Of a stretch of DNA of 64,000 nucleotides, positions 2,539 to 9,743 are shown piece after piece. Source of the DNA: Convolutriloba macropyga. Its lineage: Eukaryota. The notes beneath the pieces were generated by a model. The model had not been told where the DNA came from, did no database searches, and saw only the letters and a program-made list of their open reading frames with translations. Both the position numbers and the translations under genes were made by a program. The stretch covers positions 65,844,001 through 65,908,000 of the forward strand of contig NC_134475.1 of assembly GCF_964194025.1 (NCBI RefSeq), read 5' to 3'. Numbering within the stretch: the first letter of the stretch is position 1; every line of letters begins with the position of its first letter.

Positions 2539-2947
2539 TGTCGTACTCAAATGAAATTACGTACTTGATTTTGAGTCGCGAGTTGCAATTATGGTTCTAC
2601 TTTGCTAAATTGCGCGGCGGGTGCGCTTAGTACAGTTTATAAATGAATTCGCTTAGCGAATCGCTTGGCAAATACTTGTCTAGCTTACTTGACTAGTTAA
2701 GACGGCTAGTAAAGAATAAGTTAATTACGCAACTGTTCGTGAAGTGCCAAACTAAAAGAGTGATACTGAAAGTAAAATGATATCTCAGAAGTCACAACGA
2801 TCATGAACAACAATTTCCCGATGCGGGAATTAAGATAACAGACTAGCACATGAACTACACTTGCCCTTCAGTAATAAGTACACTAAAATAAAATAAGTAC
2901 ATCGTATAATAAATTTACTGCACTATATTAATTGATGATGTATGACA
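2539..2947 (-). repeat. 3' LTR of E1
   Basis: TGTCGTAC...GTATGACA with inverted termini; direct repeat of 9335-9743. Confidence 0.97.
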
Positions 2948-2958
2948 TTTCTCCCTCT
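2948..2958 (-). other. Polypurine tract of E1
   Basis: Minus strand reads AGAGGGAGAAA immediately before the 3' LTR. Confidence 0.9.
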
Positions 2959-3104
2959 GTAATGCGAATTAAAATTGCGTAGAATAAAATTTTAGTAACA
3001 ATATGGATAAAATTAATACTTATTCACCGGTTAAATAGTTGTCAACAATATATGTACTGGTTATCATAGCTAGTCATATTTAATAATATATCAAGTTTAG
3101 CTTT

Positions 3105-3602
3105 TCAAAGTTTTTGGATATCTTCCTCATCAATTATGAGTTCATTGGATGAGTTGTGATCCGCTGGTCGGGTGCGAGGATCTGTCGGGGATACCTGTCC
3201 TGTGATAGGCGAGGGGAACTCATTCTCGATTAGTTCAACTCGCGATGCAGTGTCCACAATTGTTTGCACTATAGATGGTTGTACTGACTCAACATCGCCT
3301 GCCGGTCGTTTTTTTCGAGGTTGGACAAAATTTGGGGGACAAGAGTTTGTTGACTCGCCAGATGAATCATCTTTATCATAGCCATAGTATTTTGTCCTTT
3401 TTGTAGCTTTTGACTGAGCTTGTTGTAAAGCTGCTGTTGGAGCTGATGTAGATGGGATGGCCAATTCTGATTGATTGTTTGTTGGAGGAGGAGCAATCAA
3501 CACTTCAGTGGTGATGATTTGCTGTTCGGGAGCAGTTTCTTGAATTGTGGGTACTTCTTGCGGCGCGAAATTTTCGGGTATTATCGGCATGCGTACACGC
3601 AT
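3105..3602 (-). pseudogene. Disordered Pro/Gln/Thr-rich C-terminal tail of E1 Pol (frameshifted continuation of the integrase ORF)
   Basis: Overlaps the end of the integrase ORF. RVRMPIIPENF and YYGY match E2 RGRIPKIPNF and YYGF. Contains a basic PRKKRP patch. Confidence 0.75.
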
Positions 3603-6025
3603 CGCACGAGCAATATTCGACTTATTGGATGAAACACCCCTCCCGTTTCCCGTTTACGATGTTTCATCTCACGGTCTCCTTTTTGAATACGGGTCGACTC
3701 TTTGATGTGGCTAAATATTTTAGCCTCTGTTGTTTTTTCGTGGATGCGTGGTCCTCTACGGTTCACGTACTCCATGAGTTTTGGCTTTCGTTCTTGGTGC
3801 GTACCAAATTTGGCAATATCGCTATTGCGAACTGTTACCTCTACTTTTCCGGGCTCGCGTATTACGGAGGTATAATGGTCCGTTTTTTGAACAATAGATC
3901 CTGGGGCCAATACCTCGTACAGCCCGTCAAGATTCTTTTTGGATCGTTTGTGAGGATGCTTCTTTCGAGCAATGTTTATCTGCACGGCATGTTCTTTTAG
4001 TGGAATTGCTCGATGTGCTTTAATAGTGCGGATAAATCGTGACTCGATATCAGCAGCGAGTCGATCACGCGTGGTGGCATCTCTTGTAGTCTTGCACATG
4101 TTGCGTTCTACTTCATCATCACTACGATCATTTCCCCAGTGCTCTTCAGGCAACAATTTGTTAGGCGTGACTGTTTCTTCATCTAAATAAAGATTCAAAA
4201 ATTTTTCATAACTTAAATCAGATGAATTTGGTTTAGTACTTATATTGCTAAGCAGTGTATTTGCTTTGCGCCCAAAATGTGATTCGAATGGCGAAAGCTT
4301 AGTTAATTTATGTTTGCATATGCGGAGCTGGTATATAATTGATTTTAATGCGGTTTTAATGGTGAGCGAATTTAATTCTTTGTTTGCCTCTCTTATACAT
4401 GCTAAGCGTTGTTTTATTGTACTAATAAATCTTTCCACTAAGCCTATTGCACGATGGTCATTTGCCGGGGCTGGTATATAAGTAATATTGTTTTTCGTAC
4501 AGAAATTTTTTACTTGATAACCTATAAGGCAACGAGCCTGATCTATTCTTAAAGAACGGGGAACTCCTTGAGTATGTAAATAATTATCCAAAAATTTTAT
4601 TACATTCGATGCATTCGCGTTTTCAAAAATTTCTGCAAATGGGTATTTCGAAAATCTATCAAAACATGTTAAAATATAGATTTCATGTTCTTTTTCAATA
4701 TTTATAGGTCCTGCAAAATCTATTTGTATTTCTTGATCTGGAACTATACATGGTGAATGTGCTTTGAATTGCTTTGCCGGAATAACAGGTTTTAAGTTTT
4801 TACCGATGGCAGTGCAAGATTTACACTCTATGGCTTTGACCAGCAGGTCGCGATTTTTGTATGGCCACCAGCAGTGCTGTGCCTTACATATCATTCCCCA
4901 GCTGCCCGGGTGACTTGCGTGCAGATCCTCGAGCAGCGCATCTTTGAGGGCGTTCGGGATGGCCACCTTCTCGTCCATACATACGCACCCGCTACTGACA
5001 TGAAGATCACGCCAATAGCTGTGGAGATACGGGTTGAGAGCTTTGAGTCGGTCCTCATCTGATCTGATAATGCAATCCCGAACCTCTTTTAGAACGGCGT
5101 CCTTGCTTGTTAGGGAAGCAAGCAGCCCTTTGTTGATTACTTTGCCCACCACTTTCTCAAATGAAATCACTTGGGGACTATCCGTGAGTGGGGTGCTGAG
5201 ATTGGAATACGAAGAGGATCGGCGCGCCGTGTTGGTTGTTGGGTTTTCTGTGAATGATACGCGAGGCGTAGTTCTATTTGCTCGAGTTGAGACTGATTTT
5301 CCTTTCATAGATGATGCTTGCTGACTCATTTTGGATGAGGTTTTAGTTTTTTCAATTAAATTAATTGACAAGGAGGAAGACAATTGCATTTCAGGTTGAA
5401 TTTGGGCAAAAAGCGACTTTTTATTGTTTGTCAATTGAGCACGTGAATTATTTAAAATATGTGAGTTTTGGGTACTAAATAAGGTAGGAATGTGAGACTT
5501 TTTCGTGATTGACAAGTGAGACTGACTTATTTGAGTAAATTGAGGCTTATTTTGGTAAGCGAGTGACGCCTTTCCTGTATTTGAGTTTATTTGAGACTCA
5601 ATTTGTAGAGGTGTAGTTTCAATAGGTAGACTATGCGACGCGAATTGAGATCTATTTTGGTAATTGTTAACATGCCTTGCAAAAGAGGCATTTGAATTAT
5701 GTGATATATTCTGTTGATTACTTAATAGGGTATTATGCCCAGCGGGTGTTAATTTGTTATGAGAAAAGCGTACTCGCGCTGCGGAAGCAGGATTAAAATT
5801 AGTGTATTTGGGAGTGGTTACTTTTGGAGTATGACTTGATTGTGCATATACAAATTGATTTTGTATTGAATGTACTCGCTCAGCATGTGCACTAGTAAAA
5901 TTCATACAATTAGTATGATTGAAATCTGGATTATAACTTTGATCAGTGAGTGATTTAATATTTTGAGTTAAGCGTACGCGCGAGGCGTGTTCACTATACT
6001 GATTTTTGATTGTGAAAGAGGACAA
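3581..6025 (-). pseudogene. E1 pol: long RH-IN spacer plus integrase
   Basis: Zn-binding H..H..C..C (LHASHPG...CKSC); DDE core QIDFAGP / RIDQA / GLVERF. Same frame as 6062-6577, separated by a single TAG. Confidence 0.93.
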
Positions 6026-6061
6026 AGGGGAAGAGTATTTTTGCGTAGCGAGTGCTGAATT

Positions 6062-7310
6062 CTAATCTGCTAAGCGTACGCGCTTAGCGGGATCACTATC
6101 AAAATTGAAGTTTTGATTTAAGAATGGTTTTAAGCTATGATTTTGCAGAGCGAGTGGCTTATTAACTTTTGTTTGGGATATAGGTTTAGCATAATCTATA
6201 TTCAACACTTGTTTAGTATGTTTGGTGGAATTTTGTATTTCACATTCACTATCATGATATAGTTTAGTAAGTTTATGAGCTGAAATGTTGTGTTTTTGTT
6301 GAAGTAATTTTGCATCAAGGTGTATGCGTGATAATGTTGCGACTAAAAATTCCTCGTCGTATTTAGAAATACTTTTTGCCGGTTTATATGGGTTACGTGA
6401 TATATAATCAACAAGTCCCATCTTTGCGCCTGGCAGGTGTTCTATTTTAAACTGGTAAGGTAAAAGACGATCAACCCATCGTGATAAACGATTATTATAA
6501 CTTTTGTTTGATCTGTGTTCTTTTAAGATTGAGAGAAGTGCTCGGTGATCGGTGATAATAGAAAATTTTTTTATCATAAAGATAATTTTTAAAATATTCT
6601 ATAGACCATACCACTCCGAGAAGTTCCAGTTCGTTAATACTATAACGTTCTTCATTACTATTTAAAAATCGGGATGCAAAAGAGATCGGCTTCCAACCAT
6701 CAACTGTTAGTTGTTCTAGTGCTGCTCCCAATCCGGAGCGAGAGGCATCACATTTAATTCGTGTTTCGAGTTGCGGGTTATAGTGAATATTTTCTTTATG
6801 ATTTGCTATGCGTGTTTTTATTGCATTGAAATGTGGAGTGTGATCGTCAGTCCAAATGGATTTGGTTGATTTACGAAGAAGGGGTCTTAAAGGATGGCAG
6901 AGTTGAGCTAGATTGGGAATAAATTTACTAATATAATGGACTGAGCCTAAGAACGAACGTAATTTTTTAACTGTATTAGGTGGTTGTAATGACAGAATAG
7001 ACGATGTTTTAGTTTCGAGTGGTGATATCCCAGATTGAGTAATATTATATCCTAATGAGGAGATTTCTTGCTTTGCAAAATGGCATTTAAGGAGATTAAT
7101 TCGGAGGTTATCTGCATCTAGTTTCTCAAGACAATCTAATACAAGTTTAAAATGGTCTTCTTCAGAACCTTTACTCACAATTAATATGTCATCCAAGAAA
7201 CAAAGTGTATTTTTGAGGCCGATTAGCGTGTAGTCCCTTGCCTTCTGAAACTCGGCAGGCATGTCAGTGAGGCCATAAAATCCCGTTTTAAAACGATATG
7301 TGCCTGTCAC
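6062..7310 (-). pseudogene. E1 pol: reverse transcriptase C-terminal part and RNase H (frameshifted)
   Basis: FYGLTDMPAEFQK, CFLDDIL catalytic motif, CDASRSGLGA, YSINELELL, TDHRAL, IEHLPG, VDYISR. Confidence 0.95.
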
Positions 7311-7373
7311 ATCACCACTTACAATATTGAAATTACAGTGTTTAGAGGTTTCGGGGTGAAGATTCAGTTGACT

Positions 7374-9335
7374 CTACGTGTTTTTAAGGTCTATAGTAGA
7401 AAAGTATATTGTATCTGCTTGTTCTGTTTTATAGTTTGTTATTATTTGTGATATGGAATCCATAAGTGTTTCGATATTCGGCATCTGATGCTTATTTTTG
7501 TGTATAGACTTATTAAGAACTTTCCAATCCAATGCTAACTTTATTGTCTGATCTCGTTTGACTGTAATTACTATAGGTGAAATAAAATATTGATCAGAAC
7601 AGTTATTCAGTTTTTCTATGTGTCCTTCTTCAAGAAGTTTTGTAATTTCAGTATTGACTCGTTCTTGCAAATTAATGGGTACTCTTCTACCCTTTTGATG
7701 TTTTGGTTGAAACTTTTTATGAAACTTAGATTTAACAATATGGATTTTTGACCGACCAATTCGTGAAATGAGTTGTGGAAATTGCTTTGCAATGCGAGTT
7801 TTGAATGGACATAGAAGTGTGATTGCGTTGACCATACTACCTTCATTTGAGTTTTGGGTTTGAGTAACCGAGATTCCGTCCAACAAATCTCTACCAATTA
7901 GTGGTTTTAGTCCGTCACGCACTACCTTAAATTCTGCATCTTCGATTTGCCATCCATTGCTCGCTATTGGTGCTTGTATCATACCCATAACATTTATGGG
8001 TTCATTTGCGAATGTTTTGAGTTCCTGAGGGGGTGTTGTCATCAACCATCGGGCAAGAGGGGAAATGTTCACTATTTCCGCCACAAGGGACTCGGGCAAG
8101 ATACTACACACACTGCCTGAGTCAGTGAGTAGTCCTACTTGGGTATTTCCAGTTTGTAACGTAGTATTCTTTGGTTCGATTTGTATAGAGTTACTTGCAA
8201 TGCTGGCGACCATGTTATCATCTGAGCTATCGTAGTCAGATTCGCATTGAGGGTTATAGTCCATATTTTGAATTGCGTTCACCGTCTGATCAATTGGGGT
8301 GTCTTCAACAGAGTTAACATTCGATCGGGTCGGCATATTTGATGAGGACTTCGGTTTTCGGCACACTCGTGAAAAATGATTTTGTAAACCACAGTTATTG
8401 CAGATCTTGCCTCTTGCAATACACTTGTCCTTGTGGTTTGCTGACCAAGTTAAACCACAATTTCTACATAGTTGATTTGATCGTCGAGTGGAGCTAGAAG
8501 TTTGTGGCCGTTGACTTGGTTGTCGAAAGGGTCGTTGAGAAGTTACCTCGTTAACATGCGATGCGGGTTGCGGATTTGTGATTTGCAGTTGGTTTCTTTG
8601 TCCTACTTCCATATTTATGGCCAAACGCGGAGCTTGAGCTGGTTCAAGAGTTTCTCGAAGTAACTCCCTCTGAATTTCTGGGTTTTGCATGTTTGCAATA
8701 AACAAGTCTCTAATCAGAGTGTCCTCTTGGCTTCCAAGTTCACAATTCTCGGATAATTCCTTCAGTTTGCCGAAGAAGTGCTCGATAGACTCTCCTTTCG
8801 ACTGTTTGGTAGTGGGAAGCATATACCTATCAAAGGTAATGTTGCGTTGACGGATAAATGTGGCTTCCATGATGTTCCAAAGTTCAGCTGTTGTTAAGAT
8901 GTCCATCTTGAGGTGCGGATTCCTGCTTCAAACAATTCGTCTTCCATCGGTGCCCAAACTGAGATATAGCATTGACACAGTCTTTCGGTCTGCCTGTGTC
9001 CACGGTTTGTCCCCACACATGATTCTTATCTCCATCTGTTTCTGGCAGTGACTTTCCCAATTCATTTTTAGTTGTGCGTTCCTTGCTAGTCTTTCCCTCT
9101 CCTATTGTGCCGACGATCCTGTTATTGTACTCTCATAGATTGGTTCAAGTGGTAGTTGTACTGTTTCCGGTTTCGGTTCCAGGAGAGTGTCTAGAGAAAT
9201 ATTTTCCTTCCTAAGGAGAGCCAATTTAGCCTGCATCTGCGACTTCTCCCACTTCAGTGGAGGATCAACGCTAGGTTTTTCCCAAAAGGGCTCAATGCCA
9301 AGTAGGGTCCGCTTTTGGGCTGCTGACTGCGCCAT
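7374..9335 (-). pseudogene. E1 gag, aspartic protease and RT N-terminus (two in-frame stops in gag)
   Basis: Starts MAQSAAQKRTLLGIEPFWEKP. Two Zn knuckles (CRNC..H..C; CNNCGLQNHFSRVC). Protease LTDSGS and LIGRD. RT start FISPIVITVK. Confidence 0.93.
9320..9334 (-). other. Primer-binding site of E1, probably tRNA-Ser
   Basis: TGGCGCAGTCAGCAG abuts the LTR. It is the complement of ...CUGCUGACUGCG-CCA, a 3' end typical of invertebrate tRNA-Ser (from memory, not searched). Confidence 0.8.
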
Positions 9336-9743
9336 GTCGTACACAAATGAAATTATGTACTTGATTTTGAGTCGCGAGTTTCAATTATGTTTCTACTTTG
9401 CTAAATTGCGCGGCGGGTGCGCTTAAAACAGTTTATAAATGAATTCGCTTAGCGAATCGCTTGGCAAATGCTTGTCTAGCTTACTTGACTAGTTAGGACG
9501 GTTAGTGAAGAATAAGTTAATTATGCAACTGTTCGAGAAGTGCAAAACTAAAAGAGTGATGCTGAAAGTAAAATGATACCTCATGAGTCACAACAATCAT
9601 GAACAACAATTTCCCGATGCGGGAGTTAAGATAACAGACTAGCACATGAACTACACTTGCCCTTCAGGAATAAGTACACTAAAATAAAATAAGTACATCG
9701 TATAATAAATTTTTTGCACTAAATTAATTGATGATGTATGACA
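9335..9743 (-). repeat. 5' LTR of E1
   Basis: Direct repeat of 2539-2947; candidate TATAAA on the minus strand at 9432-9437. Confidence 0.97.

Follow-up and report, generated by a model that had tools for sequence, protein, structure and literature searches.

Where does translation of gag begin in a long terminal repeat (LTR) retrotransposon whose 5′ LTR runs into the coding region without any leader? This question is raised by E1, an element on the minus strand of a 64,000-nt stretch of the Convolutriloba macropyga genome (NCBI RefSeq assembly GCF_964194025.1, contig NC_134475.1, positions 65,844,001 to 65,908,000 of the forward strand), which was analysed over its whole length and is referred to as the window. 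In E1 the 5′ LTR's final base and the first two bases of the primer binding site (PBS) for tRNA-Ser together form an ATG in frame with gag. Judged from coding constraint and from copies elsewhere in the genome, the AUG at this junction is very probably the genuine gag-pol start.

Structure of E1 and its LTR/PBS junction

E1 (2539..9743, minus strand) is a complete but dead Ty3/gypsy LTR retrotransposon of 7.2 kb, recognised by its LTR pair with TG...CA ends, a polypurine tract (PPT), 5-bp flanks and its domain order. The 5′ LTR (9335..9743, minus strand) starts with TGTCATAC and finishes with GTACGACA, its tail reading ...ACGACA at 9335, while the 3′ LTR (2539..2947, minus strand) lies directly behind the PPT agagggagaaa (2948-2958). 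Both LTRs are about 94% identical, and the 5-bp flanks are GCCAA and GCCGA. The homology between the two LTRs ends exactly at 9335/2539; beyond this point the 5′ copy continues with TGGCGCAG and the 3′ copy with GCCGAAAT. Thus, the ATG at 9333..9335 (minus strand) is composed of the LTR-terminal A and the TG of the PBS. It stands in the context GAC ATG G, with a purine at −3 and a G at +4. The PBS TGGCGCAGTCAGCAG (9320..9334, minus strand) is a 15-nt perfect complement of the 3′ end of tRNA-Ser(AGA) including CCA. It follows the LTR with a spacer of 0 nt and is coding at once (codons 1-5, MAQSA), the leader between PBS and gag being 0 nt as well.

The frame opened by the junction ATG begins with MAQSAAQKRTLLGIEPFW and is identical to the frame of the gag-protease open reading frame (ORF) at 8906-7374, since the two positions 9335 and 8906 are 429 nt (3 × 143 codons) apart. 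It runs through a Gag N-terminal extension of 143 codons (8907..9335, minus strand) into the gag core with two CCHC knuckles, the protease and the start of the reverse transcriptase (RT; 7374..8906, minus strand, according to the ORF translation). In the window copy this frame is cut by two in-frame stops at 9104-9102 and 8930-8928. The ORF 8906-7374 contains the D(S/T)G protease motif in addition to the CCHC knuckles, and Pfam domains were found in broken ORFs further downstream (RVT_1/RT_RNaseH in 7310-6495, rve in 6025-3581). The resulting order gag - protease - RT - RNase H - integrase places E1 in the Ty3/gypsy group (Metaviridae), and the tRNA-complementary PBS behind the 5′ LTR together with the PPT in front of the 3′ LTR identifies it as an LTR retrotransposon. 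The original prediction, made from the window sequence before this analysis, had described the junction geometry, a PBS encoding MAQSA in frame with gag and the lack of both spacer and leader; all of these points were borne out.

A second, diverged family is represented in the window by E2 on the plus strand, for which the same geometry with a mutated start codon had been proposed. Its 5′ LTR (about 29759..30147, plus strand) also ends with ...GTACGACA, and its 3′ LTR lies at about 36166-36542. The letters at 30140-30162 read ...GTACGACA|CGGCGCAGCCAGCA and confirm the proposal: the junction (30147..30162, plus strand) consists of the degenerate start ACG (30147-30149) and the PBS variant CGGCGCAGCCAGCAA, and the peptide following ACG, AQPANKRTPLGIDAFW, is homologous to that of E1. 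The homologue of the Gag N-terminal extension (30147..30560, plus strand) carries a stop and frameshifts in the window copy. Thus, both copies in the window are dead, E1 because of its two stops and E2 because of ACG and the frameshifts.

Conservation of the junction across copies and families

For each of the E1 and E2 families 30 genomic copies were fetched. The junction triplet is ATG in 29/30 E1-family and 26/30 E2-family copies, the LTR end ACGACA is retained in 26/30 and 24/30, and the G at −3 in 27/30 and 26/30 copies, respectively; the G at +4 is a base of the PBS. In several natural copies the frame runs uninterrupted from the junction ATG into the gag core, in two of them as far as the zinc knuckles, and other E1-family copies are open through both positions at which E1 carries its stops.

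Throughout the 1.18-Gb genome the exact 14-nt PBS occurs 1,914 times, compared to 0 occurrences of a reversed control, and 1,741 of these sites (91%) are directly preceded by CA, which places the junction beyond chance. The GCAGCC form of the PBS with CA in front was found 308 times genome-wide, and exact junction 16-mers number about 2,050. From contig C1, 20 PBS sites were sampled in positional order by taking every few listed matches. All 20 are followed by the same Gag N-terminal domain in frame, and three of them are open over the full 500 codons examined. A young element of a further family, at locus L080, has 322-bp LTRs with 99.1% identity, TG...CA ends and the flanks ATAAT/ATAAT; it encodes an unbroken polyprotein of 2088 residues with RT, RNase H and integrase in gag-to-integrase order. 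Codon 1 of this polyprotein is the junction ATG (...CATAACA|TGGCGCAGCCA), and gene callers place its start at the same ATG.

A full HMMER search with the E2-family Gag revealed many diverged Gag fragments (33-57% identical) with the same start Met, reading MAQS... or MAQP.... Across 15 diverged Gag families identity amounts to 83% over residues 1-5 and to 38% over residues 6-110. The LTR ends of the families (GTACGACA, GATATCACA, GTATAACA, CTCTCACA, GATAACACA, CATAACA, ATACAACA, GTATGACA) differ from each other. According to this, at least eight families share the junction design, all of them starting with MAQS or MAQP, and the overlap is kept in at least six families besides those of E1 and E2.

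No named Pfam domain was found in the 77-aa N-terminal piece of E1 or in its 510-aa gag-protease ORF, and the Gag N-terminal extension as a whole (about 140 residues; 9105-8907 of the window, minus strand, and homologues) gave no Pfam match. It carries the motifs PFWEKP, W.KW, KLA.LAKE, EPIYE, ERER, CGDKPW and LYLS.G.EGRR and was matched only in this organism in the protein searches made here. In an exhaustive protein search the best 150 matches were fragments from this organism's own assemblies only. A word-indexed protein search returned own-organism matches together with 'uncharacterized protein LOC142334924 [Convolutriloba macropyga]' (P0194), and residues 1-160 only of the intact 2088-aa polyprotein as query gave no match. 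A host gene (L078:2913-4211) on the ENA assembly ERZ25071359, which is a metagenome-type filing, is 100% identical to the genome of the window.

Coding constraint downstream of the junction ATG

Between the E1 and E2 families, the proportion of differences in codons 1-76 is 0.23 at nonsynonymous (pN) and 0.80 at synonymous sites (pS). In codons 6-33, which lie 5′ of any alternative Met, pN is 0.24 and pS about 1, while the pN/pS ratio is about 1 in the other two frames. Low pN together with saturated pS in the frame of the junction ATG only indicates conservation at the protein level, in the frame set by this ATG.

Beyond the junction, the frame has its next Met at different places, M34 for the E1 family and M57 for the E2 family, and this Met is thus not conserved between the families. 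Upstream of the junction, in-frame stops are located at a distance of 15-60 nt in most copies, and an in-frame ATG between the nearest 5′ in-frame stop and the junction is present in only two copies of the two families taken together. Intact copies starting at a downstream Met, which the original prediction had named as the observation that would speak against it, were not seen: no downstream Met is conserved, and the L080 polyprotein starts at the junction. Furthermore, the LTR tail is free of ATG in every frame over the last 249 nt in E1 and the last 214 nt in the E2 family; 34/2000 and 103/2000 dinucleotide shuffles, respectively, were equally ATG-free. A TATAAA at 9432..9437 (minus strand), 102 nt 5′ of the start codon, is a putative promoter of E1 and implies a 5′ untranslated region (UTR) of roughly 70 nt. 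TATAAA is found at −98 to −102 in 24/30 E1-family copies.

In the mechanism proposed here, the U5 end (...CA) abuts the tRNA-Ser PBS (TGG...) without a spacer, and the resulting AUG would be the first AUG of the transcript. It would start a single gag-pol polyprotein, in which PBS nucleotides 3-15(18) would serve as codons 2-5(6), A-Q-S/P-A-(G). Scanning ribosomes would be expected to initiate at the junction AUG, in keeping with the ATG-free R-U5 region and the good Kozak context. The N-terminal MAQS/PA may be fixed by the need to pair with tRNA-Ser and not by the function of Gag.

Translation versus priming

The predicted primer duplex of 14-18 bp has a free energy of −29 to −38 kcal/mol (−31.6 kcal/mol for E1) and begins at the U of the AUG. 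Since positions +2 to +15/18 relative to the AUG lie in this duplex, a primed RNA would not be initiated at the junction, and an initiating ribosome would in turn cover the PBS and block priming. With a duplex over the AUG or a ribosome over the PBS, translation and priming would be physically exclusive on one RNA molecule. A translate-versus-package switch, as suggested in the original prediction, is physically plausible as far as the arrangement of these sites allows us to infer. It is a serious possibility, falling a little short of an even chance, that the exclusion of translation and priming matters for the partitioning of the RNA.

Primer annealing in Ty elements and retroviruses is promoted mainly by Gag/nucleocapsid (NC) during assembly (PMC5371799). 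Annealing at that stage counts against a role of the exclusion, which may then never be rate-limiting. Since no leader is present, packaging signals would have their place either in R-U5 or, as is the case in Ty1, inside the coding region of gag (PMC5454406). Synonymous sites are saturated in codons 6-76 between the families, and thus no sequence-conserved RNA element common to the families is evident there.

Primer tRNA and the two PBS variants

The pattern TTCGAAT-N6-GACTGCG occurs at 64 sites in the whole genome compared to 3 in the control, and those sites checked with ARAGORN are tRNA-Ser(AGA) genes. These genes have the 3′ end ...GGTTCGAATCCTGCTGACTGCG, whose reverse complement with CCA added begins with TGGCGCAGTCAGCAGGAT. 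The match of the PBS to tRNA-Ser(AGA) extends over 15 nt in E1, 14 nt in most E1-family copies and 18 nt in the relative L079. The GCAGCC variant matches a second gene set ending with ...CTGCTGGCTGCG, identified as tRNA-Ser(CGA) by ARAGORN. Thus, the matching of both PBS forms to tRNA-Ser isoacceptors that had been suggested as a check gave a clear assignment, GCAGTC to tRNA-Ser(AGA) and GCAGCC to tRNA-Ser(CGA). The tRNA-Ser genes form large tandem clusters at G000:C12:7.085-7.166 Mb, C13:11.331-11.372 Mb and C4:80.387-80.394 Mb, with dozens of copies at a spacing of 0.5-2 kb and the AGA and CGA isoacceptors interleaved.

A single position distinguishes the two tRNAs over their final 18 nt. 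It is also the sole PBS position with a high-frequency polymorphism, and the alternative base there is precisely the one carried by the other tRNA. Among the E1-family copies 24 have T and 6 have C at this site, among those of the E2 family 19 and 11, respectively; with C, codon 4 is CCA (Pro) instead of TCA (Ser). T>C changes at the T of the ATG were counted as a measure of decay following insertion. Only 18 such junctions were found versus the 308 junctions of the C variant, and this 17-fold excess indicates that the variant arose and spread in active lineages. Both variants are found within E1, within E2 and in other families. In trees built from the flanks the T/C site requires 4 changes in the E1 family and 9 in the E2 family (30-copy tree), the latter resembling shuffled labels. 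Nevertheless, homoplasy is equally high in 39/95 (E1) and 13/152 (E2) columns of similar allele frequency. Homoplasy in the trees as a sign of recurrent primer switching was therefore dropped as evidence, many comparable columns being equally scattered.

The T/C pattern fits copying from an alternative primer and, equally well, selection for a perfect tRNA-Ser match. The original prediction had taken it as established that the PBS is copied anew from the tRNA. This stands for retroviruses; it does not stand for the LTR retrotransposons tested, Ty1 and Ty3 of yeast, in which a mutant primer sequence is not inherited according to PMC5371799 (citing Lauermann & Boeke 1994 and 1997). For the families described here, copying of the primer sequence into the progeny, with residue 4 being Ser or Pro depending on the primer used, is possible, with the balance leaning against it.

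A fuller interpretation extends rather than excludes the junction as gag start. The AUG within the PBS would be an evolved switch between translation and priming/packaging, and the tRNA would be copied into the PBS in each cycle, as in retroviruses, so that the tRNA-Ser pool would write Gag residues 2-6, including residue 4 as Ser or Pro depending on the primer. The coincidence of the only frequent PBS polymorphism with the only difference between the tRNA-Ser 3′ ends, the 17-fold excess of the C variant, its presence alongside T in E1, E2 and other families and the nine changes on the E2-family tree speak in favour of this interpretation. Nevertheless, we regard it as rather unlikely. Selection alone is sufficient to explain the pattern, as an exchange of T and C is the one PBS change that preserves perfect pairing with an available tRNA-Ser. 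Moreover, the homoplasy is unexceptional, the primer's sequence is not inherited in either yeast element (PMC5371799), and the switch itself would be deduced from the sequence. Still less probable is a model in which the primer tRNA acts in trans as a repressor of the start codon of its own template, a one-duplex switch between mRNA and genome, and is copied as well, thereby flipping residue 4 between Ser and Pro via AGA/CGA. In this case the start codon would become a target of host 3′-tRNA fragments.

Weighing the junction ATG as start of gag

Several points weigh against the junction ATG as start of gag. All evidence comes from one genome only, and the transcription start and the initiation site are placed by way of sequence features and are thus putative. 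The statistics of the ATG-free LTR tail are modest (p about 0.02 and 0.05). Furthermore, at zero spacer the ATG and the G at +4 come automatically from CA + TGG. As CA is kept for integration and TGG for priming, conservation of the triplet alone is no proof of a start codon, and the case rests on the coding signal and on the lack of an alternative conserved start. What is non-trivial is that the junction ATG sets the frame in which the conserved Gag domain is read, that no other start is conserved and that R-U5 is free of ATG.

The ATG could be incidental, with Gag beginning either at a Met further downstream (E1: M34; E2: M57) or upstream of the junction, at a non-AUG codon in U5; the conservation behind the PBS would then reflect RNA signals for packaging or extended primer contacts. 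The automatic origin of the ATG, the cis-acting RNA signals that adjoin the PBS in Ty1 (PMC5454406) and a GTG located in frame 9 nt 5′ of the junction in E1-family copies can be quoted for this explanation, which we nevertheless consider very improbable: pS is saturated and replacement sites are kept in the junction frame only, including codons 6-33, the downstream Mets differ between the families, in-frame stops precede the junction in most copies, the GTG is missing from E2, and gene callers begin the intact polyprotein at the junction ATG. A start at a downstream Met was rejected because these Mets are not conserved between the families and coding constraint is found 5′ of them; conservation of RNA only behind the PBS was rejected because pN is far below pS in the junction frame only.

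With the junction ATG retained as start of gag, E1 and E2 are likely to be dead members of two families that belong to a large Ty3/gypsy group with a maximally compacted 5′ end, in which the junction AUG would be both the first AUG and the start of the polyprotein.

Further observations in the window and the genome

An AATAAA is located at 30134-30139 of the window, 13 nt before the LTR end, as in most E2-family copies. With this position, cleavage would be expected at or past the LTR end, which would mean a very short U5, none at all, or read-through into flanking DNA. In the E1 family no AATAAA stands at the LTR end.

Two tandem arrangements were found among the copies. Three segments consisting of LTR end, PBS and gag N-terminus (L019, L023 and L024; G000:C4:57.729-57.734 Mb) lie on one strand at a spacing of about 975 bp; they are a short 5′ piece of the E1 family repeated in tandem, not separate insertions. 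At L078:10001-17600 three LTRs about 3.8 kb apart are each followed by an identical PBS and belong to another MAQS family; this layout of LTR-internal-LTR-internal-LTR is the expected product of unequal recombination between LTRs. The window also contains tandem repeats of about 1.5 kb at 40800-45900 (3-5 units, 64-97% identical, families D1-D12), which are unrelated to the junction.

Comparison with known retroelements and significance

A PBS inside the gag ORF with overlapping signals for translation, packaging and priming is already documented for Ty1. In this element the PBS (nt 95-104) lies within the GAG ORF behind a 53-nt 5′ UTR, and the signals for initiation, packaging and priming overlap in the 'TIPIRT' domain (PMC4974528, PMC5454406). 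The elements described here share with Ty1 a gag frame that stays open through the PBS and a PBS that belongs to the translated sequence, as indicated by the open copies, the intact polyprotein and the coding constraint. They differ in that the AUG of Ty1 is located in U5 about 40 nt 5′ of the PBS, whereas here it is split between LTR and PBS. The Ty1 junction CA|TGG is not a start codon and is read as His-Gly. Ty1 is furthermore a member of the Ty1/copia group (Pseudoviridae) in Saccharomyces cerevisiae and uses tRNAiMet, in contrast to the Ty3/gypsy domain order, the tRNA-Ser primer and the animal host in our case. The present arrangement is thus a tighter version of that of Ty1.

A zero or negative spacer between LTR and PBS is shared with the gypsy lineage of Drosophila, in which LTR and PBS overlap by one base, the last of the former being the first of the latter (PMC3286476), and with Cer1 of C. 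elegans, in which the PBS directly adjoins the 5′ LTR (PMC3315495). In insects the Mag lineage mostly uses tRNA-Ser or tRNA-Leu primers, and some Mag elements have long 5′ UTRs with tandem repeats (PMC3286476). A tRNA-Ser PBS as found here is common among Mag elements (PMC3286476) without being a defining trait of this lineage. In contrast to the elements of this study, the junction as gag start is not reported for the gypsy lineage, Cer1 or Mag in PMC3286476 and PMC3315495. In HIV-1 the gag AUG is occluded by U5:AUG pairing, a conformation connected with dimerisation and packaging, and translation is influenced by the PBS segment (PMC11181671). The AUG of HIV-1 is located about 150 nt 3′ of the PBS and its occlusion is intramolecular, whereas here the primer tRNA itself would be the occluder. 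In mouse, small RNAs (3′-tRNA fragments) complementary to the PBS repress active LTR retrotransposons post-transcriptionally, according to a preprint (bioRxiv 10.64898/2026.01.22.698655); in the elements described here such a fragment would cover the start codon.

A full-text literature search, in a collection with few of the older subscription papers in which elements of this kind were first described, revealed no account of a gag start codon that spans the LTR/PBS junction, and a prior mention is possible. To our knowledge, the junction is the tightest overlap of integration end, primer site and translation start in the 5′ end of a retroelement. For annotation, the gag ORFs of such elements should start at the LTR/PBS junction, and masking or prediction of tRNA-fragment targets based on the PBS will fall on coding sequence. 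The elements offer a natural system for asking how the RNA of LTR retroelements is partitioned between translation and priming/packaging, and whether the primer sequence in metazoan Ty3/gypsy elements is inherited as in retroviruses or behaves as in yeast Ty1/Ty3. Finally, MAQS/PA is constant in families that are otherwise about 38% identical, and according to this a retroelement protein may have its N-terminal sequence fixed by the 3′ end of a host tRNA.

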